Shown here piece after piece: positions 8,386-62,626 of a DNA stretch of 64,000 nt. The stretch is taken from the IMG/VR virus record IMGVR_UViG_3300032245_001860, positions 1-64,000 of that record. One strand, written 5' to 3'. Position 1 is the stretch's first letter. Each line of letters starts with the position of its first letter. The position numbers were made by a program, and so were the translations under genes. The notes under the pieces were generated by a model. The model was not told the DNA's origin, ran no database searches, and was given only the letters and a program-made list of their open reading frames with translations.

Positions 8386-8458
8386 GGGCGATTAGCTTAA
8401 TGGTTAAAGCAGGGGACTCATAATCCCTTGAGTGGGGGTTCGAGTCCCTCATCGCCCA
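8386..8458 (+). tRNA. tRNA with CAT anticodon (Ile2 likely, or Met)
   Basis: Acceptor GGGCGAT/ATCGCCC, anticodon arm GGGGA-CTCATAA-TCCCT, TTCGAGT T-loop. Confidence 0.92.
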
Positions 8459-44134: not shown

Positions 44135-45868
44135 TTAGTTTCCTTTTTTATAGTTTTTATTATTATACACACCTGCATAGGCCCAATTTTCATCTTTATC
44201 AGTCATTGGCCTTTCAGTGAGCTTGTCTATTGTTTGATTGTTATTTTCTTCTATTTCGTGTTTAGGAGCAAATAATCTTAATTGTGATCTGTTATTTTCT
44301 ATTTGTTTTTCATGAAGATCAAGAAGTGGTTGTGTTTTTAAGAACGGGATTATTTCATCATCACTGTAGAAATTTTTTCTATATCCACTTGGTATTCTAA
44401 AATCATTGCCTGTCTTTTCTTTATATTGAAATGCAAATTTACTTTTCTCAAAGAAATTTTCTATTTTATTTGCCACTAAAAAATAAAGATATTCAGGTTG
44501 TTTTTGATACCAAGACATGAATGGTTCTTTTGATTCTGAATCTTTATATTTTTCTTTTGCTTCTTCAAACTTTTTTGTAGCTGTTTCAAGTACACCATTG
44601 ACATCTAAATATCTTTCAAAATTGTGTGTAGTAAATGATTTTTTTAATGCTAATTCTGCTTTGTGTTCTAATGCAGTGTAGAAAGTGTTAGCGTAATCAT
44701 CAAGAGGATAATCTTCTATTGTATATGCTTCATTATCCCAATTAAATGCACTACCTGATCTTTGTAATCCATCATGCATTTCACTAATTGCAGCATCTAT
44801 AATATCTGGAATATGTGAGCCATAAAGATTTGATTCAGCGAATTGTTCATGATTCCAAACAGGAGATATAATTCCAAATCTGTTAAAATCTTCTGTTACA
44901 TCATCATCAATAGCATCATATTCTGATTCATCTGGGCCATAAATAGATTCTGTTATAGCGTATCCAATTTGATCAGGTTCATATGTCCAATAAATTCTTT
45001 CTTGCCAATCTTCAAAATGATCAGCTACAGGATTTATATTAGATTGTTTTTTGATATCTTCTCTGTCGTCAAAAAATTCTCTAATTTTTTCCACTAAATC
45101 ATCATCTTCAACTTTAGCATTATTTGGGCCCTTGATTTGAATTACTTTATCACCTTGTATTTCAATTGTTGCTTTAGGTTGATTTTGTGGATCTCTTAAG
45201 GAATAGATTCTTGAATGTCCTCTTCTCACTGCATCCCAATATCCAGCAACACAGTGATGCATTTTTGCACCTTCAACATCAAGATCATTTTCTGATTTGA
45301 CATTTACCATATTCCAACCATCAGGATATGCCATTACTACTTCTCGGTCAGCTGGATTGTAAAATTTACCTCCACCTTTACCTATAAGTATTTGCTCCCA
45401 TTCATCTGTGTCTTCAACCACTTGTTCCCAGGACTTCAATCCAAGATTATAATCAGGGTCATTTGTTTCAATATTGTTGACAAAATCTTGCATATGGAGA
45501 GCTTGTTCTAAAAAATTAGCATGCTCACCATTCATACCACCTGAAGGAATATTATGATCATATTCACCATTAGGTTTTTGAGGTTGTATTCTCCAGCCTT
45601 TTAATTTATGAAATAACCAGTTTTTAAATCTTTCATTTGTGAAGTTGTCTAATATGAATTTTTCTTCTCTTGTTGGTCTATTTTGACTTGAAAGATTTTC
45701 TAATTCTTGCAATGTGATATTTGGATTTTGTTTGATTGCGCCTAACATTTTACCTTTGGCAGCATTATCAAATTTGGGGTCAGAAAAAACAGCTAAAATA
45801 GATTCATTTATGCCTTGAGTTCTAAGCTTTTCTACTTCATCTTGTAAACTTGCAAATCTGTACCACAT
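44135..45868 (-). CDS. PcfJ-like domain protein with MWYR N-terminus
   Basis: LDVEGAKMHHCVAGY...IYSLRD..QPKATIEI...QIKGPNN. Confidence 0.78.
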   Translation of the reverse strand: MWYRFASLQDEVEKLRTQGINESILAVFSDPKFDNAAKGKMLGAIKQNPNITLQELENLSSQNRPTREEKFILDNFTNERFKNWLFHKLKGWRIQPQKPNGEYDHNIPSGGMNGEHANFLEQALHMQDFVNNIETNDPDYNLGLKSWEQVVEDTDEWEQILIGKGGGKFYNPADREVVMAYPDGWNMVNVKSENDLDVEGAKMHHCVAGYWDAVRRGHSRIYSLRDPQNQPKATIEIQGDKVIQIKGPNNAKVEDDDLVEKIREFFDDREDIKKQSNINPVADHFEDWQERIYWTYEPDQIGYAITESIYGPDESEYDAIDDDVTEDFNRFGIISPVWNHEQFAESNLYGSHIPDIIDAAISEMHDGLQRSGSAFNWDNEAYTIEDYPLDDYANTFYTALEHKAELALKKSFTTHNFERYLDVNGVLETATKKFEEAKEKYKDSESKEPFMSWYQKQPEYLYFLVANKIENFFEKSKFAFQYKEKTGNDFRIPSGYRKNFYSDDEIIPFLKTQPLLDLHEKQIENNRSQLRLFAPKHEIEENNNQTIDKLTERPMTDKDENWAYAGVYNNKNYKKGN

Positions 45869-45871
45869 AGT

Positions 45872-47680
45872 TTAAGCCTTGTTCGCCAATCTAAATCTTT
45901 TATTATTGAATGAATATCTCCACTCATTCACGCCTTCAGTAAATAATTTTTGCTGTTGTCTTCTACTTAAGAAATCTTGGTAATAATCTTCTGTTCCTCT
46001 ATACAATGCTTCACTTGGAGTAACTGGTGAAACATCTAAATTAATAGATAGTTTATTTGCAATATCATAAAACTCTTTTGGCATATTGTTTCTTATATAG
46101 GTATACAAAGCTCTATAAAAATAAACAGGATAAACATCATAAATATTTTCATATTCTTTGAGTTGATGATAACCTCTTGAATCTGGCCTCTCATATGGTT
46201 GATTTGCTAATTCATTTATTTCATCATCACTCATATTTTCAAGATTTAATTTGACAGGTTTGTTTCCAGGATTAAATTCTTCACTTACTGCTGCTTCTTT
46301 ATAATCTCTAATTTTTTCTAATTCTTCTGAGAGAGCTTCTTTGTATTTATGTCTTATATCATCTATATTAAGACCGCTTATTATAATTTCTCTGTTTGTT
46401 CCTAAAGTACCAACTTGAGATGCATAGTCCTTAATTTTTTCTAAATCTTTACGAATATACATATCGCCAAGTAAAGAAATTAATTCATCAAATCTATCAT
46501 CATCAGGTATTTCTTGATAAGTTTTATAATAACCAGCATTATCTACCCCGACTTGACTGATTAAATATTCAACTGGCAAGTCTCTGTAAAGGTCATCATA
46601 ATCTCTTTCAATTGGCCTGTAACGAACACCCAATTCGTCAGTCATTGTTTCATCATTTTCAGGATTTAAATAATCTGCAATTGCATACAAAGCATCTTGT
46701 TCAGACATATTCTGATTCAGGTTCAGGTCTTCATTGAGATCATGTTTAGAATAAAAATTATTTTGTTCAATCCAGTAAAGAGCTAATTTTTTATACTCTG
46801 GTTTGGGTGGTTTATTGCCTTTGCCTTGAATTTGCTTTACTTTGTCAGGCAATCCTATTTCTATAGTAACATGTGGTTTGTTTGATTCATCTCTTAAAGA
46901 ATAAGTGTCGCTAATGCCTTGTTCATATAAGCCATGGTAATTATTTGTGCCTGTACAGTGACCCATATTTTGACCTTCAGCATCAAAATCTCTTTCTTGG
47001 GTAAGTTTGACCATCATCCAATCATTGTATTCTTCAGGTAATCCTAAAGATTTAACTGTCTGTGCATCAAAAATCATTACTACATTTGGGTCAACTATTT
47101 TGCCATTTTCTTTCTTGATTTTAGAATATGTTGCACCTGGTTCTTGATTACTTAATTCTTCATGCCATATTTCACTGGCTCTACTTGCTTGATCTAAATT
47201 CATAGAAAAAATATTGAATCTTGGGTTTTCACTTACATATTCAACATACCAATCTAAAATATGATAAAGCTCATTTGTAACACCGATAATTGGTCCTATA
47301 GCAATATGTGAAAATTTAGGATAACTGAATTTTTCTGGGTCATGTTGATTTGGTCTGTAAGAAGGTAAAGCTACTCTTTCAACCCATTTATAAAAATTAG
47401 CTTTTTGTTCTTCGGAAATATTCATTCCTGATAATCTTGTGTCTAAATCTGCTAATAATCTTAATTCGTCATTAGATACTTTTTGTAATTGATTAGTTTG
47501 GAATTTGCCTTGTAATTCATCCCAAGGCATAAGAGGATTTTGCATCAAGGCTCCAATATATTTACCTCTTAATGGTATATCGGTCATTGCTTGTAGGTTA
47601 TCAATTGTGTCATCGCTTACACCTTTAGATTTAAGTGTTTCAAAAGCTCGTTCTACGTTTTGTGCAAGTCTATACCACAT
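45872..47680 (-). CDS. PcfJ-like domain protein (paralogue) with MWYR N-terminus
   Basis: EGQNMGHCTG...YSLRDESNKPHVTIEI...QIQGKGN. Confidence 0.78.
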   Translation of the reverse strand: MWYRLAQNVERAFETLKSKGVSDDTIDNLQAMTDIPLRGKYIGALMQNPLMPWDELQGKFQTNQLQKVSNDELRLLADLDTRLSGMNISEEQKANFYKWVERVALPSYRPNQHDPEKFSYPKFSHIAIGPIIGVTNELYHILDWYVEYVSENPRFNIFSMNLDQASRASEIWHEELSNQEPGATYSKIKKENGKIVDPNVVMIFDAQTVKSLGLPEEYNDWMMVKLTQERDFDAEGQNMGHCTGTNNYHGLYEQGISDTYSLRDESNKPHVTIEIGLPDKVKQIQGKGNKPPKPEYKKLALYWIEQNNFYSKHDLNEDLNLNQNMSEQDALYAIADYLNPENDETMTDELGVRYRPIERDYDDLYRDLPVEYLISQVGVDNAGYYKTYQEIPDDDRFDELISLLGDMYIRKDLEKIKDYASQVGTLGTNREIIISGLNIDDIRHKYKEALSEELEKIRDYKEAAVSEEFNPGNKPVKLNLENMSDDEINELANQPYERPDSRGYHQLKEYENIYDVYPVYFYRALYTYIRNNMPKEFYDIANKLSINLDVSPVTPSEALYRGTEDYYQDFLSRRQQQKLFTEGVNEWRYSFNNKRFRLANKA

Positions 47681-47797
47681 GTGTCTTATTCCTCAATATA
47701 CAAATTATTATAAGAATTTAGCTTACGAACCTGTAATTAATCAATTTTTCATTTTTGGTGCGTATAATAGAGTACTTGTGAAAGGAAAAATAAAAAA

Positions 47798-48097
47798 ATG
47801 AACAAGATTTTAGTTTCTATTGCAGCTTTTATGGTTGTACTTGGTGTAGTATTCGCTCAAAGTCCTGGTGGATTTCAAGATCCACAAGAGGCACCACGTC
47901 CAGGTCAAGTTCCAACATTTGGTGGTGGACGAAATGGTGGAAATGGTGGTGGTGTAGTTGTTACAGCAAATGAAAAGTATCTTTTTGTTGTTACAGGTGG
48001 CACTATCTATAAGTATGATGTTGATAGCATGATCCTAAAGGGTAGAACAGAGGTGCCATCTAACCAAAATCGTAGACCTGAAAGACCAAATAACTAA
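47798..48097 (+). CDS. Secreted Gly-rich small protein
   Basis: Signal peptide ending VFA-Q. Confidence 0.65.
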   Translation: MNKILVSIAAFMVVLGVVFAQSPGGFQDPQEAPRPGQVPTFGGGRNGGNGGGVVVTANEKYLFVVTGGTIYKYDVDSMILKGRTEVPSNQNRRPERPNN

Positions 48098-48216
48098 ACA
48101 AATAAAGAGTGGAAAAATCTTCCACTCTTTATTATTTAACATTCACTTAACATAACTTGTTAATAAATACATAATAATAATTGTGTTTGCAGACTTTTCT
48201 TTCAAAGGTTTATAAA

Positions 48217-49116
48217 ATGAAAAAAGCTTTTACCTTAATTGAACTTCTCGTAGTTATTGCCATCATTGCTATTTTGGCTGCTATTCTCTTCCCTGTCTTC
48301 GCTCAGGCTCGTGATAAGGCTCGTGGTGCTTCTTGTCTTTCCAACCTTAAGCAAATCGGAACATCCACCATGATGTATGTTCAAGATTACGATGAGAGCT
48401 ATTATCCTCACCGCTTCAACTGCCGTGATGCATCTGGTGCTTTCCAAGTTTGCCCTCAATATGTTGGCGATCCTGCTGCTGCAGCCTATGATTCTAACTC
48501 TTCAATGCGTTATTATTGGGTTTACTTGCTTCAACCATATGTAAAGAACTACCAACTGTTTAAGTGTCCAAGTAATCCAACAGCATTTGTCCCTGGCGAC
48601 AAGGCGAAGGTTAACTTCAACGCTCCAGGTGCCCTCGGAACAAACTATGGTGGACAGAACTCATATGGTCACAATGATGCTTGGATGAGCCCTGCAGGTG
48701 CTTTCGCTGATGCAAGTGGCAACCCAGCAACTGTTGCTGGTGCAAGTGTTTCCCGTCCAGCTGGTGTTATTCTTGTCACTGATGCATCTTATTATGGTGT
48801 TGTTCCTGACATTATGAACGAATCAGGTCTCCTTGAAACCAACAAGTTTACAGCTGATGAACTTGCTGCAATCCAAAACTATGTCAATGGTCAAGGTTCT
48901 CAATACAAGTCTTACTGGAAAAACCTTGGTAATGGGGGCTGGAGTGCAAATGGCGGAACTGTAACTGCTGCTACTGCTCTTTCAAGAATGTCTGGTCGTC
49001 ACACTGGTGTCTTGAATGCAATCTTTGTTGATGGACATGCTAAGGCTGTTCAATATAAGAAGGCTGTTGGTGACCTTTGTCTGTGGACTACTGCCGAGTA
49101 TGCTGGCTGTAACTAA
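48217..49116 (+). CDS. Prepilin-type N-methylation / DUF1559 protein with H-X9-DG motif
   Basis: [41 protein letters not shown]...MYVQDYDE; [16 protein letters not shown]. Confidence 0.92.
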
Positions 49117-49177
49117 TCTTTAGTTACTCAAAAAAGAGAGGAGAAATCCTCTCTTTTTTTATTAGTATAAAAAGAAT

Positions 49178-49903
49178 ATGGAAAAATTAAGAGGTTTGTT
49201 AATTTTAAGAGGAACAAGTTTTCGGCATAAGAATACAACAGGTCATTGGAAATCAGTATATCAACAAATTGCCTGTACACTGAGCCATCTTAAGTTAGTC
49301 AAAACTACAATAAAAAAATATGGCTGTAATTTTGATATTGCATTAGATACATTAAGCACACCTTACGATCTAATTATATTATTTATCTTGAGAAAGTATT
49401 TAGTTTACAGAAACATCATGTCCTGGCCTGATTACAGTCAGATAGATGGAATATTGAGATTTTTCTGTCAAATAGAATCAAAACTGTTTGAATATGATTT
49501 TATTTTAATTGCTCGAAACGATATTATTTTATTTGATGAATTTATTAATAAATTTAATCCTAATGATGATAAAATTAAGTTTCCTTTCATTCATTCTTAC
49601 AGAACAAGAAGAGTTTATGGAACAAGTGAGTTTCCTATAGTTGGAGATGCTTTCATGTATTTTCCAAAAAAATATTTCTTCACATTAGCTATAATCAACA
49701 TAATTGCTTCTGGATTTCACATGCATGATATTGTTCACTTGATGAAAGAAGCAAACTTTGATTTTGAATTTGATGTATATTGTAATACCTATCATGATAC
49801 AAACTCAGAACTTGAATGGAATCCTTTATATAAGATGAGTGGCAGACCTCAATCTAAAGTAATTGGCTCTGATTTAAATTTGAAATATCCAGAAGATTTT
49901 TAA
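49178..49903 (+). CDS. Uncharacterised protein, possible glycosyltransferase-like; paralogue of 57473 and 58228
   Basis: GL.I.RG.SFR, RND and HDTN..WNPLYK..RP...NLKYPEDF motifs. Confidence 0.6.
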   Translation: MEKLRGLLILRGTSFRHKNTTGHWKSVYQQIACTLSHLKLVKTTIKKYGCNFDIALDTLSTPYDLIILFILRKYLVYRNIMSWPDYSQIDGILRFFCQIESKLFEYDFILIARNDIILFDEFINKFNPNDDKIKFPFIHSYRTRRVYGTSEFPIVGDAFMYFPKKYFFTLAIINIIASGFHMHDIVHLMKEANFDFEFDVYCNTYHDTNSELEWNPLYKMSGRPQSKVIGSDLNLKYPEDF

Positions 49904-49962
49904 TCCAATATGTCAAAAAAACGATAAGATTATCCTATTTTTTTATTGGTATAATATGCAAA

Positions 49963-50820
49963 ATGAGTAACATAAAACTTGGATTGTCAGGATGCAAAAT
50001 TGAGTTGCTATCAAAAAATATAATAAGAAAGCACTCCAAGGATTTATCTTACAATGCAAGATTAGTTTCTCAAGCAAATAAACAAAAATATTTTAATAGC
50101 TTATATATACCAAACATAAGTTCGCCTCAAGTTTATTCTATAAATCAAAATAATTTATATTATTTTGATATGGAATATTGTACTGGTAAGAACTATTTTC
50201 AATTTTTAGACAATTGTTCAATTAAAGACTCTCAGGATATTTTATGTACACTTTTTCGATATTTTGACTTTATAATAAATAACTCTCAACCGCTTGAATA
50301 TAACTACGTTAAGGATAAAATTATCCAAAAACTGCAATCTTTAGCCTCAAAAAGTGAGTATTCAAAAATTATAAATTGTATTATTGAGACGTATGATGAG
50401 TTAGGCATTAATAATGTAAGAAGTTCTTTTTGCCATGGAGATTTGACTTTTAGCAACATTTTATTTTCTAAAGGCCACATCTACTTTATAGATTTTTTGG
50501 ACTCTTTTATTGATTCTTATTATATTGATTTTGCAAAAGTAAAACAAGATATTTATTATCACTGGGCTATCAATATCAATCATGATGAATCTTTGAGAAT
50601 TTTGCAAAACTTTTCTTTCTTTTGGTATAATATATGTGAAAGATACAGTGAAATTATATCTTCAGAAACATTTGATTTATTTGATTTCTTAAACCTAATT
50701 AGAATAGAGCCCTACGCAAATGAAACACATCGTGAAATCTTGAGACACTGTATAAGAAAACACAAGTATTATGTCAACTTTAATAGTACCAATGGCAGGT
50801 CAGTCATCCAGATTTCCTAA
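49963..50820 (+). CDS. Phosphotransferase (APH/choline-kinase-like) of sugar cluster
   Basis: GLSG, FDMEY, CHGDLTFSNILF and YFIDF motifs. Confidence 0.8.
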   Translation: MSNIKLGLSGCKIELLSKNIIRKHSKDLSYNARLVSQANKQKYFNSLYIPNISSPQVYSINQNNLYYFDMEYCTGKNYFQFLDNCSIKDSQDILCTLFRYFDFIINNSQPLEYNYVKDKIIQKLQSLASKSEYSKIINCIIETYDELGINNVRSSFCHGDLTFSNILFSKGHIYFIDFLDSFIDSYYIDFAKVKQDIYYHWAININHDESLRILQNFSFFWYNICERYSEIISSETFDLFDFLNLIRIEPYANETHREILRHCIRKHKYYVNFNSTNGRSVIQIS

Positions 50821-51829
50821 TAGTAGACCGAAATGGATGTTGTCTCATCCAGTAACTAAAACTTACATGGTTTTAGAATCTATTTCAGGCATTAATTTAG
50901 ATTTTTTCGATAAGATTATTTTTGTTGTCTTGAGAGAACAAATTGAAAAATATGATGTTTTGCCTTTTTTCAATAAAGAATTATCAAAACTCGGATTACA
51001 AGATAAGAGTGAAATTTGCATTCTCGATAAACAAACCAAATCCCAGTCAGAAACAGTAGCTAATGCAATTAAAATTCACAATATTAAAGGTTTTATTTAC
51101 ATCAAAGATTGTGATAGTTTTTTCAAGGTAAAACTTACAGAGAAGAAAAATCTTGTTTCGTATTTTGATTTACACAATATTAAATATATAAATGCAATTT
51201 CTAAAAGTTATATTGATATTGATTCAAATCATAAAATTATAAATATTGTTGAAAAAAAGATTATAAGTACTTATTTCAATGTTGGCGGTTATGCTTTTGA
51301 GAATGCTGAGGAATTTTTGAGTCATTTTCAAAAAATAAACTCTTTTGAAAAAGAATGTTTTATTTCTAATGTCATTTACGAAATGATGCTTTCAAATAAT
51401 GATTTTCATGGACTTCTGACTACAGACTATATTGACTGGGGAACTTCAGAAGATTGGGAAAATTATACTAAAAAATTCAAAACATTATTTGTAGATCTTG
51501 ATGGAACTTTAGTTCAAAATTCTTCACATTTGATCCCTCCCAGTATTGGTGAAGGACTACCATTATTGAAAAATATTGAAACTCTCAGGAAGCTTTACAA
51601 AGATAAAAAAACCTATGTTGTAATAACTACTTCAAGACCAGAAGAATTTTATAAAGAGACTATTCAAGAACTATCAAGAAACAACATTCCGTTTGACAAA
51701 TTAATTATGGGATTGCCACATTCCCAAAGAATTATAATTAATGACTTTGCGAATTCTAACAAATATCCGTCATGTTCTGCCATAAATGTTCCGAGAAATA
51801 GTGAGACACTTGAGGATTTCCTAAAATGA
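50771..51829 (+). CDS. Nucleotidyltransferase fused to HAD phosphatase
   Basis: IVPMAGQSSRF..PK, IKDCD, DWGT; C-terminal FVDLDGTL and TTSR. Confidence 0.85.
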   Translation: MSTLIVPMAGQSSRFPNSRPKWMLSHPVTKTYMVLESISGINLDFFDKIIFVVLREQIEKYDVLPFFNKELSKLGLQDKSEICILDKQTKSQSETVANAIKIHNIKGFIYIKDCDSFFKVKLTEKKNLVSYFDLHNIKYINAISKSYIDIDSNHKIINIVEKKIISTYFNVGGYAFENAEEFLSHFQKINSFEKECFISNVIYEMMLSNNDFHGLLTTDYIDWGTSEDWENYTKKFKTLFVDLDGTLVQNSSHLIPPSIGEGLPLLKNIETLRKLYKDKKTYVVITTSRPEEFYKETIQELSRNNIPFDKLIMGLPHSQRIIINDFANSNKYPSCSAINVPRNSETLEDFLK

Positions 51830-52830
51830 AAATATTGATTACTGGGGCTGCTGGTGGTATTGGTTCTCTAATATGTGAATCCTTGGGTGAACATTTTGAA
51901 TTAGTTTTGGTTGATAACTTTAGAAATGGATTTCGTGAAAATTTACCAAATCATTGCATTCATGAAATTGATATTTGTTCAAAAGAATTTATTGATCTAA
52001 CAAAAAATGTTAAACCTGATGTTATATTGCATTTAGCAGCTATCACATCTCTGCCAGATTGTGAGTCAAATAAATCAGAGTGTATTCAAGTAAATGTCAA
52101 TGGGACTGTAAATGTTTTAGAGGCAGCCAGACATGCAAATGTGGAAAAAATAATCTTTGCTTCTACATCAGCTGTTTATGAAAACAATTTATCAACTGAA
52201 TCTCCTTTTATTGAAAGTTTACAAGTAAGTCCATTATTGTTTTATAGTTTGTCTAAAAAGATGGCTGAAGATGTTTGCAATTCATATATAAAAAATTATG
52301 ATATGAATATTATTACATTAAGATTTTTCAATATTTTTGGACCAAATCAAGATACTAAAAGGAAATCCCCTCCTTTACTTAATTATTTGGTCAAAAGTGT
52401 TATTGATCAAGTTCAACCAGTTTTACATTCAGATGGAAAGCAAGAAAGAGACTATGTATCGGCATATGATTTAGTTGAGTTGATTAAGACTATTTTACAA
52501 AATGATACTTTTGAAAGTGATTGTTACAATGTAGCATCAGGTGCAACTTTGTCTGTCAAAGATATTGTTCATTTTGTCGAAGTTTCTTTAGGTACTAAAG
52601 TAAATCCAATTTTCAGATCTCCAAGTATGTTGTGGGACAACTATCCTGCATTGTTTGAAACCAATAAGCCTCTTAATAAAAACGTTATAAGTAAAGAAGC
52701 AAACAAATTTAGTCTTGGTTGCAACAAAAAACTTTTCAAAAAATTTGGATGGAAGCCTACTACTGAATTTCAAAAAGAATTTGAAAAAGTTATAATAAAA
52801 TTGTCTGAGAGAATAAAAAATGAAGATTGA
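51826..52830 (+). CDS. NAD-dependent epimerase/dehydratase
   Basis: ITGAAGGIGS, HLAA, ASTSAVY, YSLSK, LRFFNIFGP and RDYV motifs. Confidence 0.93.
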   Translation: MKILITGAAGGIGSLICESLGEHFELVLVDNFRNGFRENLPNHCIHEIDICSKEFIDLTKNVKPDVILHLAAITSLPDCESNKSECIQVNVNGTVNVLEAARHANVEKIIFASTSAVYENNLSTESPFIESLQVSPLLFYSLSKKMAEDVCNSYIKNYDMNIITLRFFNIFGPNQDTKRKSPPLLNYLVKSVIDQVQPVLHSDGKQERDYVSAYDLVELIKTILQNDTFESDCYNVASGATLSVKDIVHFVEVSLGTKVNPIFRSPSMLWDNYPALFETNKPLNKNVISKEANKFSLGCNKKLFKKFGWKPTTEFQKEFEKVIIKLSERIKNED

Positions 52831-53671
52831 CATTTTGATGCAAGGTAGATTTCATGACTACACTTTTGATTTTGCATACGATTATGCTGATTTAGATTAC
52901 GTTAATAAAGTAATTATTTCTACTTGGAAAAATCATAATGAACCATTTACCTGGCTTGAATCACATCCTAAGATAGAATATGTATTTTCTGAAGATGTTG
53001 ACTTTGCTGCAGACAACAGAAATAGACAAATTTATAGCACTCTTGCTGGATTAAGGAAATGTAAATCTGAGTTTACATTGAAAACAAGGACAGACCAATT
53101 CATATACCTTAAGTGTATTGACAAACTTGTAGATTTTTATGACAAACATAAAGAACCAGTGATGCACTATCACGACAATCCCTCTATGCCTCACAATAGA
53201 ATGTGCGTAGCTGGGATGTATAAAACTTATCCTTATTGTCCAAGAGACCACTTTATGTTAGGTAATACAAAAGACTTAATTGAATTCTTTGATATCCCTT
53301 TAGATTATCAATTCCAATTTACCCCAGAGAGACAAAAAGAATTTAATGAAAAAGGAAGAGTAATGCTTGAAGACTTCGAGTGGAACACAAGATGTGAAGT
53401 CTATATGGGCGCTTGGTATTGTGCAAAATTTGACAAAAGGGTATATAATCATTTATGGAATTATAAAAAATATCTTACAGATTTAGCTCCTAACTTGCAT
53501 GAGTCAATAGATCTATCAAAAGAAATAGTTACCAAAATCATGAAACCATTTCCAAGACAAGGCGTAGACTTTATGTGGCCATCGCACGGAATCAAAAATT
53601 ATTATTATGATTATCAAGCTGAACATGGTCAATTTTGGGCAGAAGATGATTCTGAATGGAACAAAGATTAA
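52820..53671 (+). CDS. WavE-like LPS synthesis protein
   Basis: ILMQG, IISTW, NRNRQIYSTLAGL, KTRTD and RDHFMLG motifs. Confidence 0.78.
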   Translation: MKIDILMQGRFHDYTFDFAYDYADLDYVNKVIISTWKNHNEPFTWLESHPKIEYVFSEDVDFAADNRNRQIYSTLAGLRKCKSEFTLKTRTDQFIYLKCIDKLVDFYDKHKEPVMHYHDNPSMPHNRMCVAGMYKTYPYCPRDHFMLGNTKDLIEFFDIPLDYQFQFTPERQKEFNEKGRVMLEDFEWNTRCEVYMGAWYCAKFDKRVYNHLWNYKKYLTDLAPNLHESIDLSKEIVTKIMKPFPRQGVDFMWPSHGIKNYYYDYQAEHGQFWAEDDSEWNKD

Positions 53672-54891
53672 TGAAAAAATATTTATCAATGGGATCACAT
53701 TATGTATCTGATTTCATTAAGAATGAAAACGAATACAATAGAGAAAAATATTCATTAGATTTATATTTTGATGAAAGTATTGGTGCATTAAGACTCAATG
53801 AAACAGCTCCTCATGACACAATGTGGGGTACTTATTGGTATAGATCTGGTATCAATGAGTCTATGCCATTAGAACTTAAAAGTATTGTTGAGCAGGTTAC
53901 TAAACGAGTAAAACACAATTCTGGTGACATTTGGCTTGACATTGCCTGTAATGATGGGACAATGTTTAAATTTATTCCTGATTCTTTCACTAAAATTGGA
54001 ATAGATCCAAGTGATGATTCTTATTACTCTGAGTCATCAAAATTGGCCACTGTGGTACAAGATTATTTTTCATATGAAGCTTACAATAAGACAGGTTTTG
54101 CTGATCAAAAATGTAAGATTATTACATCCATAGCAATGTTTTATGATTTGGAAAATCCTCATATTTTCATCAAAGATATTTGCAGAATCTTAGACAATGA
54201 TGGAGTGTGGGTTATGCAACTTTCATACACCCCATTGATGTTAAAGCAAATGGCTTTTGACAATATCTGTCACGAACATGTATATTACTATTCTTTGCAA
54301 AGCTTGAAGAATTTATTTGAACAACATGATCTTAAAATAGTTGATGCTGAAATCAATGACGCTAATGGTGGTAGTGTTAGAGTTTATATCCAAAAAAATA
54401 CAGCTTCATTAACAAGTTTTGGAACAGCTCATTTAAGAGATGTATGTGAATTCAAAATCAATGCATTATTGGATTATGAATTGAAACATTACGACATAAC
54501 TTCAGAAGAAAATTGGATTAGATTTTCAGAAAAACTCCATGATCTTAAGAATCAAACTGTTGATTTCATAAAAAAAGAAAAAGAATTAGGCAAGAAGATT
54601 TATGGATATGGAGCTTCTACAAAAGGTAATACTTTATTGCAATTTTATGGTTTAGATCATAATCATATTGATGCAATAGCAGAAAGGTCACCATATAAGT
54701 TTGGTTTGAAAACTGTGGGTTCTAACATCCCAATTGTTTCTGAATCTGAAATGAGGGCTGCAAAACCTGATTATTTACTTATTTTGCCTTGGTGTTTTGT
54801 TTCTGAATTTGTAGAAAGAGAAAAAGAATTCTTGGAAAATGGAGGCAAATTTATTGTCCCATGTCCAGATTTTCAAATAATAGGATTATAA
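53656..54891 (+). CDS. NDP-hexose C-methyltransferase-like protein
   Basis: YWYRSG, LDIACNDG, FDNICHEH, NGGSVR, YGASTKGNTLL and LILPW motifs. Confidence 0.88.
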   Translation: MEQRLMKKYLSMGSHYVSDFIKNENEYNREKYSLDLYFDESIGALRLNETAPHDTMWGTYWYRSGINESMPLELKSIVEQVTKRVKHNSGDIWLDIACNDGTMFKFIPDSFTKIGIDPSDDSYYSESSKLATVVQDYFSYEAYNKTGFADQKCKIITSIAMFYDLENPHIFIKDICRILDNDGVWVMQLSYTPLMLKQMAFDNICHEHVYYYSLQSLKNLFEQHDLKIVDAEINDANGGSVRVYIQKNTASLTSFGTAHLRDVCEFKINALLDYELKHYDITSEENWIRFSEKLHDLKNQTVDFIKKEKELGKKIYGYGASTKGNTLLQFYGLDHNHIDAIAERSPYKFGLKTVGSNIPIVSESEMRAAKPDYLLILPWCFVSEFVEREKEFLENGGKFIVPCPDFQIIGL

Positions 54892-54892
54892 T

Positions 54893-55513
54893 ATGAAGAA
54901 TGTATTTTATGATGGTGATGGTCCTGTTGGTGAATACTTGAGGAACAATTATTTTTTAGATTATGATTACAAAGGTATTTTGCTTGAAGTAGGTGGGGGA
55001 CATCCAGAACAGTATTCATTTTCTAAACATTTTATTGACAATGGCTGGAGAGGTATTATTTTCGAACCAAATCCAAAATATGCTCAAATGCATAGAGAAT
55101 TGGGAAATGAAATTTATCAAGTAGCAGTTTCGACCAAAGATGAAGAAAATGTAGATTTTCAAATATTAACAAAATTTGGTGATTTTGAAATGTCTGGTAG
55201 TGCGTTAAGTGTCAAATATCAAAATGAATTTTCACCAGGTACAACAGTAAGTTCAATCAAGGTTGATGTAATAACACTAAATTCTTTTTTTGAAAAAAAT
55301 AATCTAAAAGAAGTTGACATTATCTCAGTTGACACCGAAGGATGGGAATTAGAAGTCATGGAAGGCTTTGATACATCTAAATATTATTCAAGATTTGTTG
55401 TCTTGGAAAATTTGAAATATAGTCCAAAGTATAATAAATTTATGAGAGAAAAAGGATATAAACTCCTTACAAATTTGGGTATTAACTATATTTACGAATT
55501 TGTAAAAAAATAA
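54893..55513 (+). CDS. FkbM-family methyltransferase
   Basis: EVGG, GWRGIIFEPNP and SVDTEGWELEV motifs. Confidence 0.85.
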   Translation: MKNVFYDGDGPVGEYLRNNYFLDYDYKGILLEVGGGHPEQYSFSKHFIDNGWRGIIFEPNPKYAQMHRELGNEIYQVAVSTKDEENVDFQILTKFGDFEMSGSALSVKYQNEFSPGTTVSSIKVDVITLNSFFEKNNLKEVDIISVDTEGWELEVMEGFDTSKYYSRFVVLENLKYSPKYNKFMREKGYKLLTNLGINYIYEFVKK

Positions 55514-55549
55514 TCATTACAATAAAAAACCCTCCTTTCGGAGGGTTTT

Positions 55550-56321: not shown

Positions 56322-56670
56322 TGTCCATAAACCCTTTTCTGCAAATCAAATGTATGTTCCAATAGCTCGTGGAAAAATGATTAAGTCCAGAAAATACAAT
56401 GCATGGATAGATAAAAATCTTCCTTTGATGAAAGAAGAAATGTTACCAGCTTATCAGTTTCCAATAAATGTAGAATTACTTGTTATGGCTAATCATTTAT
56501 GGAGAATGAAAAATGATTCTGATAACTTAGTAAAACCATTAATTGATCTTTTAGTTAGAGCTGAAATCATTCCTGATGACACCTCAAGATATATTGAAAA
56601 TGTACATATAAGGTATTTATACATTCCGGGCGATCCAATGGTAAGAATTTCATATGAACCTGTGGAATAA
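56302..56670 (+). CDS. rusA: RusA-family Holliday junction resolvase
   Basis: PFSANQMY and DSDNLVKPLIDLL...IIPDD motifs. Confidence 0.82.
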   Translation: MQKTSCIVHKPFSANQMYVPIARGKMIKSRKYNAWIDKNLPLMKEEMLPAYQFPINVELLVMANHLWRMKNDSDNLVKPLIDLLVRAEIIPDDTSRYIENVHIRYLYIPGDPMVRISYEPVE

Positions 56671-56679
56671 ATAAATACT

Positions 56680-57456
56680 ATGTGGTATAGACTTTCCAAA
56701 AAAATTATCAAAGCAGAAGACGAAAAAGATCCATTAGGTATAAGTGAAATTAAACCTACTCAAATTTCTGATGACCCATATATAAAGAAACTCAATTCAT
56801 TGATCAAGTCTGGGCTAATGACAGAGTCAGAATTTTTTGATGAACTTATATTAGAAAGACCTGATTTGATGCAAAGTATGGTTTCAACATCAAATATTCC
56901 TAATGATCAAGAAATAGATAGAATAGTTTCACATGTTAAAAGTCAAGGTGTTAAAGTAAATGCAAAAGACAGAGATGCTTTGGCTAAATTTTACGATATA
57001 ACAGCATATGTATATATTGATTTCATAAAAGAACTCGAAACAAATTTTTCTTTTATCTTGAGAAATTTAGCAAGCAAAAATTTATTGCCACAACAATATT
57101 TTAACAATATAGATGATCATGATGCTGGAATGTTATTAGGAGAGTTGATAGAACCATCAACAATTGAACAGTATCTTTCAAGAGAATATCTTGAGTTAAG
57201 ATCTGCTGGTATTGATATTAATGAAGCAATAAAAATGATTTCTGATGGTGATTTTAGCACAATAGAAGAAGCATTTAATGATTTCATTGAAAGATATATT
57301 TCTGTATTAGCTCAAAAAGTTACAAGAGCTACAGGCGTTCAATATCATGAAGAAGATATTGCAAGAAAATTTGAAGAAAAACAAATTAATTTAGACAATT
57401 TAAATTTTACAGTTGAAGATACATTAGCGGAACTTTATTACATATATAAGAATTGA
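56680..57456 (+). CDS. Hypothetical protein with MWYR N-terminus
   Basis: MWYRLSKKIIKAE. Confidence 0.65.
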   Translation: MWYRLSKKIIKAEDEKDPLGISEIKPTQISDDPYIKKLNSLIKSGLMTESEFFDELILERPDLMQSMVSTSNIPNDQEIDRIVSHVKSQGVKVNAKDRDALAKFYDITAYVYIDFIKELETNFSFILRNLASKNLLPQQYFNNIDDHDAGMLLGELIEPSTIEQYLSREYLELRSAGIDINEAIKMISDGDFSTIEEAFNDFIERYISVLAQKVTRATGVQYHEEDIARKFEEKQINLDNLNFTVEDTLAELYYIYKN

Positions 57457-57472
57457 TTGTACAATTGCCTTT

Positions 57473-58195
57473 ATGAAGGGTTTAATTTTATTTCGAGGAT
57501 TGACTTTTAGAGGTTTTGGCAAAAGTAGAGATATTGATTTATCTGATCATTCTTATTCTAATCAATTAAGTGCAACAAAATCGCACGTTTCTTTAGTTAA
57601 GCATCTTGAATCACAAGGTCATGAAATAGATGTTGCATTTGATACTGTTGAATGCGAAAAAACTTACGATCTTATAAGATTGTTTGGTTCCAATCTTAAA
57701 TATTACGCACTTAAAAATGTAATAGATTTAGATATGCAATTTTCTTTTTATAGATCTGTAAGAAGTTTAGAACCAATTTTCTTTTATGTTGATTATGATT
57801 TCTTTTTAGTTGTTAGAAACGACTTAATGTTCAAAGAAAATTTTTTTGAAATGTTTGATCCCAGTTGCCAAGAGTTGAAATTTATTTCTGTTTTGTGGCA
57901 TATAAATAGAAAAACTGAAAATAATAATCCAAGAGTTAATGATTGTGTGTTCTTTTTTCCCAAAAAATATTTTCACCTAATCAGTTCAATACCTGAACCT
58001 GGTGGGTGCGATTTTCACAACATTTTAGATAATTGGAATAAGCCTGAAAATAAATTAAACTTTAATTTTTATTTAGATAGATATCATGATTCAAACACTC
58101 ATTTAGACTGGAATCCTCTATACAAATTAGTAAATAGACCTGAGGCTGATAAGCAATTTAGTGATCCTAATTTGAAATACCCAGATGATTTTTAA
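57473..58195 (+). CDS. Paralogue of 49178 and 58228
   Basis: MKGLILFRGLTFR...VRND...NPLYKLVNRP..DPNLKYPDDF. Confidence 0.7.
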   Translation: MKGLILFRGLTFRGFGKSRDIDLSDHSYSNQLSATKSHVSLVKHLESQGHEIDVAFDTVECEKTYDLIRLFGSNLKYYALKNVIDLDMQFSFYRSVRSLEPIFFYVDYDFFLVVRNDLMFKENFFEMFDPSCQELKFISVLWHINRKTENNNPRVNDCVFFFPKKYFHLISSIPEPGGCDFHNILDNWNKPENKLNFNFYLDRYHDSNTHLDWNPLYKLVNRPEADKQFSDPNLKYPDDF

Positions 58196-58227
58196 TTGTT
58201 TGAAACCTTAATTGTACAAAAGACTTT

Positions 58228-58950
58228 ATGAAGGGTTTAATTTTATTTCGTGGTTTGACTTTTAGAGAGTTTGATTCAAAGAGAAGGTTTGCAGAATCTT
58301 TAGAATCATATAATAATCAAATAAGTGCAACACTTTCTCATGTGAAATTTGTCAAGCATTTAAAATCTCAAGGTCATGATATTGATGTTGCATTTGACAC
58401 TATTCAAACACAACATACTACCGACTTAACTAATTTATTTGAAGATAATCTAAAATTTTGTTCTTTGAAAAATGTTATGGACGTTCATACACATTATTCA
58501 CTTTATAGAGCTGTAACTAACCTTGAGCCTGTGTTTTATAATGTGTTTTATGATTTTTTTGTCATTGTAAGAAATGATATGTTTTTGAAAGATCAATTTT
58601 TCGAAGTTTTTAACCCTGATGATGATAAATTAAAATTTATGTCCATCACATGGTACAAACATAGAAAAACACCTAAAAACAATCCAAGAGTCAATGATTG
58701 TATGTTTTTTATACCACGACAATATTTCAATATTATGAGATTTTTGCCAACTGATCCTGGGTCAGATCATCATGATATTTTAGATATTTGGTTAAAGGAA
58801 TTTCCAAAATTAGAATTCGATTGTTATCTTAAGGGGTATTTTGATTCTAATACAAAAAATGACCAAAACCCTCTTTATAAATTAGTAGACAGACCTGAAG
58901 CTCAAAATCAGGATAGTGACCCAAATCTTAAGTTTCCAGATGATTTCTAA
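58228..58950 (+). CDS. Tandem paralogue of 57473
   Basis: Same length (240 aa) and same motifs. Confidence 0.7.
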   Translation: MKGLILFRGLTFREFDSKRRFAESLESYNNQISATLSHVKFVKHLKSQGHDIDVAFDTIQTQHTTDLTNLFEDNLKFCSLKNVMDVHTHYSLYRAVTNLEPVFYNVFYDFFVIVRNDMFLKDQFFEVFNPDDDKLKFMSITWYKHRKTPKNNPRVNDCMFFIPRQYFNIMRFLPTDPGSDHHDILDIWLKEFPKLEFDCYLKGYFDSNTKNDQNPLYKLVDRPEAQNQDSDPNLKFPDDF

Positions 58951-59210
58951 TTTCTCAACATTCTTTCTATTGCTATTTGCTTTGATGTCTTAACTGGTCT
59001 GTGTGGAAAACTTTGCTTCATACTGGATAAAGTATATAAAGCTTTATGACATAGCTCTTGTTGTTGAATTACTGCGCTTTGAAGTTCTTTTGCTCTTTGA
59101 TCAGGTCCAGCTTGATACCCAAAGCCATAACCTATCACACCGAAGGCAAAACAACTGAATACAAATATAGGTAAATTCTTCAAAAATTGATTCTTCATCA
59201 TTTTCTCCAA
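58947..59210 (-). CDS. Small membrane-anchored protein
   Basis: N-terminal hydrophobic segment. Confidence 0.55.
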   Translation of the reverse strand: MEKMMKNQFLKNLPIFVFSCFAFGVIGYGFGYQAGPDQRAKELQSAVIQQQELCHKALYTLSSMKQSFPHRPVKTSKQIAIERMLRN

Positions 59211-59288
59211 TTAAAAAAGCCCTATCCATTTTAGGATAGGGCTTCTGTGCTCTATTTATATAATACAATATTTGAAGAAAAGTTCCTA

Positions 59289-60053
59289 TTAGATTTTAGA
59301 TACTTGAAAATTTTTACCTGTCAATTCTGTATATCTTGCTAATGAAAGTTCAAAATATTCATCGTCAAGTTCGCAACCTTTGAAATTTCTTCCAGTATTA
59401 TCGCAAGCAATCATAACAGAAGCTGCCCCTGAAAATATATCCAGAACAACATCTCCAGGATTTGTGTATGCCTTTATCAATCTTTCTAAGATTTCTAATG
59501 GCTTTTGTGTTGGATGCCAATTACAGTATTCTTTTGAAGTTGTATGATTATTCTTTTCCCATACACAAGTTGGGATAGTGCCTTTTTCATATTCTTTGCC
59601 TGTACGAATATTAATTTTTTGTTTACGAGCTACATTGACATCATCAGCATTAAACAAGAATTGCTTATCTTTTGAATAGCACCAAATATATTCATGCTTT
59701 CTGGCAAAATTCTTTTTTGATCTTCCTCCCCAATTGTAAGACCAAATAATTTCTTCATTACTAAAGAAATTAGGAATTTTATTGAGGATATCAAGTTTAT
59801 ATTTGAGAAATGTGTCATATTTCAGAGTTCCAAAAACACACATCATTCTGTTAGGCTTCAAAACTCTAAAACATTCTTTTGTCCAGAGTTCGCACCAATC
59901 AAGATAATCTTTTTCAGAAGCCCATTGAGAATCCCAACCTTTACCTCCATCATATCCAAGAAAATATGGAGGGTCAGTAAGAATCATATCTACACTGTTA
60001 TCAGGCAATGTCTTGAGATATTGAAGGCAATCAATGTTTTTGTACTCGTGCAT
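59289..60053 (-). CDS. Beta-class N6/N4 DNA methyltransferase (orphan)
   Basis: TDPPY, HPTQKP and VLDIFSG motifs. Confidence 0.93.
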   Translation of the reverse strand: MHEYKNIDCLQYLKTLPDNSVDMILTDPPYFLGYDGGKGWDSQWASEKDYLDWCELWTKECFRVLKPNRMMCVFGTLKYDTFLKYKLDILNKIPNFFSNEEIIWSYNWGGRSKKNFARKHEYIWCYSKDKQFLFNADDVNVARKQKINIRTGKEYEKGTIPTCVWEKNNHTTSKEYCNWHPTQKPLEILERLIKAYTNPGDVVLDIFSGAASVMIACDNTGRNFKGCELDDEYFELSLARYTELTGKNFQVSKI

Positions 60054-60137
60054 AGTTGCTATTATACCATAAGAAGGTTCAATATTTTTAATTGTAGAAA
60101 AAGAATGTAACTGTTTTTCAGATAAGGATTTTTTATC

Positions 60138-61436
60138 ATGGATAGAGATGAACTTGATATTTATTTAGAGCTCGCCAATGAAGCTGAAAATGCTGGCGAT
60201 TATAGAACTGCTGACAAAATTGATGGCATGATTAGAGAAGCGCAAGCTGGCGTAATGGAAAGATTGAGAAGAAGACTCAGAAATACCAAACTCCCAAGTG
60301 AAAGACGTGAGCTTGAAAGACAAATTCGCCAAACAACAAATGGACCTTCCTTTGTTGATAGATTTATGAGAAGACAACCGTCATTTTCTGATGCACAAGC
60401 AACAATTGATGCTGGACAAAACATAAGTGGTGGATTTGAAAAGAAAAATCTTAATATGGATAAATCTTTGCTTGGAAGATTAAGAAATGCTTTTCAATCA
60501 GTTTATTCTCAAGAAATGAAATTGAGAGATCAGTTTCCACAAGCTTTTGAAGCCTGGGATGCTGACATCCGAAGACAAGTCCAGACACAAATTAATGATG
60601 AGATTGCAAAAAGAACACAACATAATGATGCATTAGCTGCTTGGAGAGCTGCAAACCCTGGCAAAGGAGCAACAGCAGCAAATGGCTGGGTTTCTCCTGT
60701 ACCTGCGTATGGGAGCAAAAATAATACTTTTAATTTATCTCCAACTACAGTTGAAGAATATCTAACAAGAAAAAGTATGCTTTCTAAAATAGACGATCCG
60801 AATAATCCATTAGTTACATTAAGAGATGCCCATCTTGATACAATTCAACGTGCAATTGGTCTTGCAAGAGCTGCTGGACACTCAACTCCAAGAGATATTC
60901 TTGCATTTATAGCCTCCGATAGGCAGCTTAGAGGTTTTCTATACGATAACTCTTCTATTACAGATGGTATGGTTAAGGAAGTTATCAGAACTAATTCTCT
61001 TCCAATGAGTGAATTCTGCAATAACTACAAGGCATTCAAGAAAAGAATGTCTCCTGGTGCAGCTTGGTTAATTGGAGCTGCAGTCGCTGGCGGAGTTACA
61101 ACTATAATAAGACCTAAGGGCGAAGATAAAGTTGTTTATGTTCCAGTACCTGGCAAACCTGAAGCCTTAAAGATTGATAATGAATTGGAAGCTGACAGAA
61201 GGAAAGCAAGACAGTTTGACACTCCTATTGCAGATCTTGAAGCATATCTTAATTTTAAGAAATCCAAGGGTGTTTACACACAAGGCAAAACTACTAAGAA
61301 AGAGCTTTACAATATGGCACTTCAAGAAAAGGGTGGGCACTTTGCAAACAACTTAATTCAATATGTATTGAAAAAATATGGATTGTATACACCTGCAGGT
61401 GGTGGAGCCGAGCCAGACGCAGCAATTGGAGTATAA
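60138..61436 (+). CDS. Putative virion protein with N-terminal tag and one TM segment
   Basis: LELANEAENAGDYRTADKID..IREAQ; AAWLIGAAVAGGVTTII. Confidence 0.65.
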   Translation: MDRDELDIYLELANEAENAGDYRTADKIDGMIREAQAGVMERLRRRLRNTKLPSERRELERQIRQTTNGPSFVDRFMRRQPSFSDAQATIDAGQNISGGFEKKNLNMDKSLLGRLRNAFQSVYSQEMKLRDQFPQAFEAWDADIRRQVQTQINDEIAKRTQHNDALAAWRAANPGKGATAANGWVSPVPAYGSKNNTFNLSPTTVEEYLTRKSMLSKIDDPNNPLVTLRDAHLDTIQRAIGLARAAGHSTPRDILAFIASDRQLRGFLYDNSSITDGMVKEVIRTNSLPMSEFCNNYKAFKKRMSPGAAWLIGAAVAGGVTTIIRPKGEDKVVYVPVPGKPEALKIDNELEADRRKARQFDTPIADLEAYLNFKKSKGVYTQGKTTKKELYNMALQEKGGHFANNLIQYVLKKYGLYTPAGGGAEPDAAIGV

Positions 61437-61464
61437 CAAAAAACCCCTCAAAAGAGGGGTTTTT

Positions 61465-61722
61465 TTATTTAACTTGTGAAATCTTTAAAAATATTTCATG
61501 TAAAGTTGAAGCTTCTTTTTCAAAACCTTTTTCTTCAAGAGCTGTGATAACTTTATTAAGTTCATTCAAGCTCTTCTTTTTTCTTTTCTTAGTCTTTTTC
61601 TTTTTGAATTTTGACCAAGCTATTGCCCAAGCAATTGATTCTTTTTGTTTATCGCTTTTGTCAGGATAAAATTCAGGATCAGCAATTAAGGCATCATGTA
61701 TTTCGTCAACTTTCTTTGGCAT
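61465..61722 (-). CDS. Small basic protein with C-terminal tag
   Basis: MPKKV..AWAIAWS; LNKVITALEEKGFEKEASTL. Confidence 0.6.
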   Translation of the reverse strand: MPKKVDEIHDALIADPEFYPDKSDKQKESIAWAIAWSKFKKKKTKKRKKKSLNELNKVITALEEKGFEKEASTLHEIFLKISQVK

Positions 61723-61723
61723 A

Positions 61724-62626
61724 TTATTCTCCTTTCAAAATTTTGATTGCTTTATCAACATCATTTTGAGTCAAGCCTTGTTTGTCTTTTGTTTTTACAA
61801 AGTTAGGGTTGTCAAAATCTTCATCTGTACTTAAATGATCATCATCTAATATCACATAACGCTCAGGTGAATATTCTTTAATTATTTTATTTATTTGTTT
61901 CCATCTGTCATCATGCTCAACTCCACCTTTTTCAGTTGCGCATTCCAATTCACCTTTGAATCCTTTATCTTCAAATATTTTTTGCATTTCTTTGATAGAT
62001 AAAACATTTCTCCAAGCAGATGAAATAACTATAGTAGGATTTACTTCTTCAACTATTTGATTTAATAGTTTGATTTTATCTTTTTGAATATATTTTGAAA
62101 GTTTGCCTTGATCAAAATCTTCTGGATGTTTCATTATATGTAAATGCGGATCTGTATTTAAAACTCCATCACAATCCAAGAATAACATTTTTGTTTGAGA
62201 TGCATAAAGTTTAGAAACAGCTTCTAAAATATGTTTTTTGCCATCCCATAAAATTTCAGGAAGATCATTTACATCAAACCATTTTAAAGCTTCACAATCA
62301 CTATCAGCTACTGGCTCTTTGTCATCTTTGTATTTGTAAGCATAAATATCGCAAAATCTTCCGTCTGATTCTGATTTGAACGATTTTTCAATTGTGTGTA
62401 GTTTTTTCTTTTTAAGCTTAAGATGAGTTTCTTCTTTGATTTCTCTGACAGCTGCTGATTCTGATGACTCTCCTGATTCTATTTTTCCACCAGGTATTGC
62501 ATATTTTGTTGAAGTTTTTTGCTCTAATAAAACTTCAACTTTGTCATCTTCTTTTCTAAATACAATAACACAAGCTACTGATTTGCTGTCACTCATTGTT
62601 CCACTTTGAGCTATTTTGTACCACAT
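61724..62626 (-). CDS. Nudix hydrolase fused to HAD (Swiss-army-knife RNA-repair-like) domain, MWYK N-terminus
   Basis: GGKIESGESSESAAVREIKEETHL Nudix box; FLDCDGVLN, VISSAWR and YVILDD motifs. Confidence 0.85.
   Translation of the reverse strand: MWYKIAQSGTMSDSKSVACVIVFRKEDDKVEVLLEQKTSTKYAIPGGKIESGESSESAAVREIKEETHLKLKKKKLHTIEKSFKSESDGRFCDIYAYKYKDDKEPVADSDCEALKWFDVNDLPEILWDGKKHILEAVSKLYASQTKMLFLDCDGVLNTDPHLHIMKHPEDFDQGKLSKYIQKDKIKLLNQIVEEVNPTIVISSAWRNVLSIKEMQKIFEDKGFKGELECATEKGGVEHDDRWKQINKIIKEYSPERYVILDDDHLSTDEDFDNPNFVKTKDKQGLTQNDVDKAIKILKGE

Follow-up and report, generated by a model that had tools for sequence, protein, structure and literature searches.

The window analysed here is the first 64 kb (64,000 nucleotides) of the IMG/VR virus record IMGVR_UViG_3300032245_001860, which is 315,852 bp long, has 33% GC and is estimated to be 88% complete. 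Our subject is a short N-terminal peptide, here called the tag, that begins MWY[RK] and heads four proteins encoded between positions 44,135 and 62,626. A sequence-only reading of this region had proposed that the four starts represent a packaging/cleavage leader. Beyond the listed open reading frames (ORFs), genes were called with a simple greedy ORF picker, and the standard genetic code sufficed. We denote the whole record G000, and related contigs and genomes by other L- and G-numbers. Translation and a six-frame scan found all four starts where they had been reported: MWYRFASL at 45868 (−), MWYRLAQN at 47680 (−), MWYRLSKK at 56680 (+) and MWYKIAQS at 62626 (−). All four are ATG codons lying 1-12 codons past the preceding in-frame stop, and the ORFs behind them encode 577, 602, 258 and 300 residues, respectively:

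44135-45868, minus strand: PcfJ-like protein A, 577 residues; tag MWYRFAS at 45848-45868; PF14284 at 48.9 bits
45872-47680, minus strand: PcfJ-like protein B, 602 residues; tag MWYRLAQ at 47660-47680; PF14284 at 33.9 bits
56680-57456, plus strand: tagged protein of no family, 258 residues; tag MWYRLSK at 56680-56700
61724-62626, minus strand: Nudix + HAD_SAK_2 fusion, 300 residues; tag MWYKIAQ at 62606-62626

Pfam also bore out the protein types that had been named. Both PcfJ-like proteins exceed the PF14284 gathering cut-off of 25 bits; they are paralogues (E 2e-18), and the tag persists in their orthologues, which begin MWYRFA[NG]LQDE for protein A and MWYKLAQN for protein B (in L104, L161 and L162). 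The 258-residue protein has no match in Pfam, PHROG or Atlas. In the Nudix-HAD fusion both domains score above gathering (NUDIX 61.4 bits, HAD_SAK_2 87.9 bits). Residues M1, W2, Y3 and A6 are invariant in 10 homologues down to 29% identity, so these tag residues are better conserved than most of the enzyme. By domain content, the protein would fit a 'Swiss army knife' RNA-repair-type fusion, and the earlier suggestion that a packaged Nudix-HAD might destroy defence signalling nucleotides or repair RNA at the onset of infection is a reasonable one. A Fic/DOC gene (62697-63305, +), whose product has no tag, lies divergently beside the Nudix-HAD gene (61724-62626, −), and the order Fic, Nudix-HAD, small ORF of 85-99 residues is kept in contigs whose Nudix-HAD proteins are only 42-61% identical.

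A motif count over the full proteome had been named beforehand as a check, and it supports the tag strongly: the record has 10 MWY[RK] starts among about 329 genes. From the residue frequencies of the proteome itself, 0.018 such starts would be expected (Poisson P ~9e-25); inside proteins, WY[RK] is near chance, with 9 occurrences observed and about 5.5 expected. Apart from the two PcfJ-like paralogues, the tagged proteins of the record are dissimilar past residue 7. The remaining canonical starts, together with variant and degenerate ones, are:

66166, plus strand: MWY[RK] start
105217, minus strand: MWY[RK] start
130051, plus strand: MWY[RK] start
147687, plus strand: MWY[RK] start
240331, plus strand: MWY[RK] start
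242323, minus strand: MWY[RK] start
290962, plus strand: variant start MSWYRLAQ, with one extra residue before W
118160, minus strand: variant start MWNYKRSKRIV; the orthologue in L133 begins MWYSRIIES
34141-37134, plus strand: first of three paralogous genes of 900-1000 residues, degenerate tag MKKLSYRIVIS
37124-39853, plus strand: second of the three, degenerate tag MFNNRIVVAQ
39846-42563, plus strand: third of the three, degenerate tag MFNYRIVVAN

The related YRIV/NRIVVA starts claimed for the triplicated genes are thus present. We regard them as degenerate tags because homologues of 780-790 residues in L099, L161 and L162 bear the canonical starts MWYKHSKIV or MWYKFSKI. A further proposed signal, (Y/F)NxK..KLA-like motifs in three proteins, fared less well. 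The C-terminal likeness of the proteins at 44135 and 45872, W.Y..(Y/F)NNK.(Y/F)(K/R), is real but specific to the PcfJ-like family, and the 'KLA' of the protein at 63331 belongs to an internal EYIKLAQ that is unsupported as a signal.

Across related phage contigs we collected 100 unique tagged proteins, and clustering them without residues 1-12 gave 35 sequence families. The tag is modular, heading at least 35 unrelated families. Recognisable among them are PcfJ-like proteins, Nudix, Nudix-HAD_SAK_2 and Nudix-thymidylate kinase proteins, NlpC/P60 peptidases, AAA_33/zeta-toxin-like kinases, and proteins with ART-PolyVal (PF18760), InPase (PF18823) and GNAT domains; the remaining families match nothing known. 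Most tagged proteins are single-domain and 74-400 residues long. ART, InPase and GNAT domains are characteristic of 'polyvalent proteins', for which Iyer et al. (2017, PMC5512222) predicted packaging and injection along with the DNA. The NlpC/P60 family offers an instructive contrast. Among its close relatives, 29 of 31 are clearly tagged and in a thirtieth the start was miscalled, whereas none of the 89 bacterial homologues is tagged and about two thirds of these (~59, by a crude regular expression) have a signal-peptide-like hydrophobic N-terminus. In PHROGs, the lysin domain of this family matches lysin modules found in tail and virion proteins of phages. A GH108 protein encoded separately at 42976-43938, which has a domain for peptidoglycan binding, could be the endolysin.

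The most widespread tagged family is a 156-residue protein (104747-105217, −, in G000; homologues P0013-P0042). Its AlphaFold2 model is confident but has no PDB match at E below 0.001, and the weak top structural matches are Cas4- or PD-(D/E)xK-like nucleases (probability at most 0.16). All 29 of its full-length homologues carry the tag, with indels of 0-8 residues between the tag and the domain.

The consensus of the tag is M1-W2-Y3-(K/R)4-(L/F/I, sometimes T/K)5-(A, sometimes S)6-(Q/K)7. A single residue inserted before W is tolerated (MSWYRLAQ, MGWYKQAS, MNWYSRAK), and the tag is kept in orthologues down to 29-42% identity. In the AlphaFold2 models, confidence by predicted local distance difference test (pLDDT) is 87.5 for the 156-residue protein, with residues 1-9 below 50, and 81.2 for Nudix-HAD, with residues 1-13 below 50 and the Nudix fold starting at about residue 16; both have a helical turn at residues 2-6. 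In these models the tag looks like a short, exposed and probably helical N-terminal peptide on a flexible linker of variable length. A Sec/Tat signal peptide, which would need a hydrophobic stretch of about 10-15 residues behind a basic n-region (twin-Arg for Tat), was considered and rejected, as the linkers behind the tag are polar or charged and have no hydrophobic core.

Is it the peptide or the underlying DNA that is conserved? For codon analysis, we aligned 74 non-identical start regions. Part of this set had been retrieved with the pattern itself; the ten tagged genes of the present genome are free of such retrieval bias and encode Ala at position 6 in eight cases. In the Ala6 codon the first two bases are nearly fixed, and the third (A 41%, T 45%, C 9%, G 5%) follows genome usage for Ala. 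Tyr3 is encoded by TAT in 65% and TAC in 35% of tags, compared with 74% and 26% genome-wide. Upstream of the starts, no position is conserved in the 74 regions save for a weak purine-rich stretch, and the tagged genes, most of which sit within operons, share no upstream promoter motif. Codon statistics thus show a tag selected as a peptide and not as DNA.

Tagged genes tend to occur in islands. In L161, 9 of 11 consecutive genes within 13 kb are tagged; L162 has 8 tagged genes in the same synteny frame, with cassettes differing at two positions. L163 has a run of 5 consecutive tagged genes, and two fragments of 52 and 66 kb have 8 and 10 tag copies inside 10-12 kb. The present genome has a looser island at 44-67 kb, with five canonical tags plus the triplicated genes.

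The distribution of the tag among phages is narrow. Five related records of 257-379 kb, with portal identities of 45-70%, have 2-12 copies of ATGTGGTAYARR against 0-1 for a reversed-pattern control. An exact scan of a viral collection with the 21-nt pattern for MWY[RK](L/F)AQ returned 35 stretches, nearly all of them true gene starts and most with more MWY starts close by. Run against 596 Gbp of prokaryote genomes, a set far larger than the viral collection, this pattern gave 17 matches, mostly in ORFs of at most 45 codons or at internal sites. Because the pattern is nearly lacking as a gene start in prokaryotes, a host-type signal can be dismissed. Unrelated phage loci totalling 1.39 Mb, retrieved by way of their HAD domain, held only two weak cases. 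The nearest cultured relative by portal is Bacillus phage G (29.6% identity), which has no MWY start. A tblastn search of 50,697 phage records found no match for PcfJ-like protein B or the 156-residue family, and Nudix-HAD matched these records through its HAD half only. By this distribution, the tag is specific to a clade of uncultured jumbo phages distantly related to phage G by portal. A literature search for the literal peptide strings returned irrelevant matches only, with no earlier description of the tag; the motif is likewise unmentioned in a jumbo-phage comparative paper and in the polyvalent-protein paper (PMC5512222). One tagged Nudix-thymidylate kinase fusion (MWYRTAK) was seen on L098, a 9.5-kb ENA contig of phage or host DNA, amid HldE-like, DUF1501 and P-II genes.

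As for the host, the window encodes a prepilin-like protein (48217-49116, +) with an N_methyl motif and DUF1559 (SBP_bac_10), and similar genes are found in L096 and L164. DUF1559 is hugely expanded in Planctomycetota, and these genes are a hint at a host from Planctomycetota or the wider Planctomycetes-Verrucomicrobia-Chlamydiae (PVC) group.

The recognisable head module of G000 lies outside the window:

119776-121893: large terminase subunit
130575-132917, plus strand: portal, 780 residues

A tagged gene of 171 residues (130051-130566) stops 8 bp upstream of the portal start, and tagged homologues lie directly upstream of the portal also in G003 and G004. Complex prediction for the portal and this neighbour gave a score of 0.00 with an uncertain fold for the partner, which counts neither for nor against an interaction. 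Downstream of the portal, a 1405-residue protein shares a domain with phage G gp19. When phage G head proteins were used as queries (BLAST, phmmer), only the portal and this gp19-like domain matched, and 20 head- or tail-region proteins had no PHROG or Pfam match; most structural proteins of this phage have diverged too far to be named. In the portal, a C-terminal stretch of ~100 residues (666-762) matches an HNH endonuclease PHROG, and the portals of G002 and G005 conserve this stretch.

What might such a tag do? Given that the heptapeptide is conserved more strongly than the enzymes behind it, these phages probably possess a conserved receptor for it, whatever the destination. The kinds of tagged domains, the contrast between tagged NlpC/P60 proteins and their bacterial homologues, and the tagged gene adjoining the portal make the virion the most likely destination, which is also favoured by the parallel between this arrangement and the capsid targeting sequence (CTS) of phage T4. 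By this analogy, the tag may be a capsid- or virion-targeting label whose bearers are delivered to the next host with the DNA, a proposal to which we give even chances. In outline, the tag is carried by a varying assortment of unrelated proteins, among them many enzymes of an anti-host-defence kind; a conserved head or virion component would recognise it as particles assemble; its bearers would be built into the particle and would enter the next host cell together with the DNA; and the tag would apparently not be removed by proteolysis. Recognition by a head component, packaging and ejection are steps that we infer. A more specific version of the proposal is held tentatively, at slightly worse than even chances: an uncleaved seven-residue 'zip code', read by a conserved head component of a widespread uncultured jumbo-phage clade (host possibly Planctomycetota/PVC), that loads dozens of interchangeable enzymes (ART, Nudix, kinase, GNAT, pyrophosphatase, peptidoglycan peptidase, PcfJ-like) into the capsid for co-injection.

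The proposed packaging/cleavage leader therefore survives in part. A short N-terminal leader is indeed shared by unrelated proteins, being modular, conserved at the peptide level, clade-specific and present on at least 35 families in tandem islands, and packaging is its most plausible reading. Cleavage, on the other hand, is unsupported: the tagged proteins share no cleavage motif downstream of the tag, the fold of the 125-residue Nudix proteins already begins at about residue 10, and a search of the 88%-complete record returned neither a Peptidase_S77 nor an S78 prohead protease. We infer that the tag is not cleaved.

Several observations count against targeting to the virion. The tag is on no cultured relative, as judged from the tblastn search of the 50,697 phage records and from phage G. 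Tagged proteins are acidic, with a median isoelectric point of 4.9 compared with 5.8 for the rest of the proteome; the internal proteins of T4 are basic. No receptor was identified, and the major capsid protein and scaffold were not recognisable with PHROG, Pfam or phage G queries. The majority of tagged genes are found away from the recognisable head module. Finally, some tagged proteins look metabolic (the Nudix-thymidylate kinase P0012, the AAA_33 kinase), and for these recruitment within the cell fits equally well.

Such recruitment is the best-surviving alternative, although we consider it unlikely. The tag would then dock enzymes inside the infected cell on a hub or compartment that the phage makes, such as a factory for replication or nucleotide metabolism, a site on the membrane or a chaperone. 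Several tagged proteins do handle nucleotides (Nudix, Nudix-HAD, Nudix-thymidylate kinase, InPase, AAA_33 kinase), interfacial or amphipathic anchors typically have such a W-Y-K/R start too, and the majority of tagged genes are not in the head module. It is harder to see why an intracellular hub should recruit an NlpC/P60 peptidoglycan peptidase whose homologues are secreted, or ART-PolyVal, InPase and GNAT domains typical of predicted injected proteins, and why one tagged gene should adjoin the portal gene. The hypervariable tagged cassettes also resemble effector loci more than a fixed enzyme complex, and the conserved small Ala6 and Gln7 suggest recognition by a protein and not lipid binding.

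Still less probable is a signal for stability or modification, in which the N-terminus would be read by a protease or unfoldase as a degron, or by a modifying enzyme, and would time effector activity. A place strictly at the N-terminus is what degrons and substrates of N-terminal modification typically have, and the tagged set resembles potentially toxic effectors that might need timed removal. Yet the variants MSWYRLAQ, MGWYKQAS and MNWYSRAK, with an extra residue before W, make recognition of the exact N-terminal residue unlikely, and the phage yielded no candidate for a partner protease or unfoldase, S77 and S78 included. A ClpS-type N-degron in particular was rejected on the same tolerance of shifted variants and on retention of Met: Met before Trp is not expected to be cleaved off, so that no such degron would be exposed.

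We judge it highly improbable that the conserved unit is a nucleic-acid element, that is, 21 nt at the start codon serving as a translational operator, a promoter-like element or a recombination site, with the peptide as a by-product. In favour of this idea, T4 RegA-type repressors bind start codons, common 21 nt could also favour cassette exchange within islands, and the tag DNA ATGTGGTATAAA resembles TGGTATAMT, an extended −10-like motif enriched in the intergenic regions of the genome. However, synonymous positions of the tag are free at genome usage, K and R alternate, upstream positions are uninformative, and the tag is maintained over genomes of 27-44% GC. The link to the −10-like motif was rejected because the frequent TAC codon (35%) breaks the match to TATA. 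Chance, or common descent of the four proteins, which the paralogy of the two PcfJ-like proteins might suggest, is refuted by a Poisson P of ~1e-24 and by 35 unrelated families, the remaining tagged proteins being alike only through residue 7, and its probability is negligible.

Several further features of the genome were recorded. The −10-like motif TGGTATA(A/C)T has 14 of its 21 copies in intergenic DNA, which makes up 4% of the genome, and a second enriched motif, TTATCACCCCAAG, has 12 of 18 copies there. Another N-terminal element, approximately h-x-x-L-A-x-x-L-D-x-x-G-x-Y-x-E-A-D, recurs often beside tagged islands and may be what the sequence-only reading took for its other signal. Proteins bearing it are:

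63331-64407, minus strand: protein with the second N-terminal element
G000 245695-246393: protein with the second N-terminal element
G000 301864-302607: protein with the second N-terminal element
L163: protein with the second N-terminal element
L164: four tandem paralogues with the second N-terminal element, starting MNKRQILASLNNIAN.LD

Other features of the window are a sugar or small-molecule modification cluster between the tagged genes, a pair of duplicated genes and a set of tRNA genes:

49963-55513, plus strand: cluster of an APH-like kinase, a HAD-like hydrolase, an NAD-dependent epimerase/dehydratase, a WavE-like protein, a C-methyltransferase and an FkbM methyltransferase
57473-58195 and 58228-58950, plus strand: tandem duplicate genes of 240 residues and no known family, with the first 13 residues identical (MKGLILFRGLTFR)
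5486-8459, plus strand: four tRNA genes (Leu-TAA, Lys-TTT, Ser-TGA, Met-CAT), with none elsewhere in the genome

In G000 261728-284524, genes at 266416, 267108, 267740, 269178, 271851, 272537 and 283838 start MG[LV]K..P.I[VI]..GL and probably encode paralogous fibre-like proteins with a common N-terminal attachment region.

Among known systems, one comparison is with the MIX markers of type VI secretion systems (T6SS) and the N-terminal signals of extracellular contractile injection systems and Photorhabdus virulence cassettes (eCIS/PVC). These too are common N-terminal markers on polymorphic effectors from variable islands. They are, however, domains or disordered regions of tens of residues read by secretion machines, whereas the tag is a heptapeptide in a tailed phage. 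Cargo-loading peptides of encapsulins and encapsulation peptides of microcompartments resemble the tag in form: cargo of various kinds is docked inside a protein shell by a short peptide at one terminus, borne on a flexible linker, and encapsulin shells share the HK97 fold with phage capsids. The encapsulin peptide differs in being usually C-terminal and of another consensus, and no encapsulin is present here.

Two further systems are comparable in part. The Dar proteins of P1 and the ejection proteins of P22 and T7 are virion-internal and are ejected into the host, anti-restriction functions included. They are, however, incorporated through specific protein-protein hierarchies, and to our knowledge no shared linear tag is known for them. 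Polyvalent proteins, presumed early effectors delivered with the DNA, have much the same domain repertoire (ART-PolyVal, InPase, GNAT, Nudix, peptidases; PMC5512222). In these, 2-15 domains are joined into a single giant polypeptide or attached to MuF or portal, whereas the effector domains found here are on separate small tagged proteins.

The closest parallel is the CTS of T4, carried by IPI-III and Alt. In both cases, a short N-terminal peptide is common to unrelated, fast-evolving proteins, several of which are anti-defence or host-modifying in T4; here one leader, MWY[RK]x[AS][QK], is found on 35 families. Alt is an ADP-ribosyltransferase, and ART-PolyVal proteins are among those tagged here. 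The internal proteins of T-even phages are described as diverse defence proteins with only the conserved CTS in common (PMC3012670). The tagged genes likewise cluster in variable islands, in runs of 5-9 and with cassette differences between close relatives. There are also differences. The tag has 7 residues and the T4 leader about 10; by eye MWY[KR]xA[QK] does not resemble the T4 leader, which is a weak test. No conserved (L/I)xE-type cleavage site was seen, and no gp21-type S77 protease that would remove the leader after Glu was detectable in the 88%-complete record. The cargo is acidic, that of T4 being basic; the phage lineage is nearest to phage G by portal (30%); and packaging is here a prediction. 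Should the tag prove to be a packaging signal, the 'first-strike' proteins that a large uncultured huge-phage group injects would become readable from its genes, and at least 35 families, most of them without known function, would become candidate anti-defence proteins. Being shorter and apparently uncleaved, the tag would be attractive for loading foreign proteins into phage particles, and, should the zip-code reading be true, these phages would possess a natural system of programmable protein delivery, its effector cassettes being exchanged behind a tag that stays constant. As a packaging signal, the tag would be only the second clear short linear capsid-targeting peptide after the CTS of T4.

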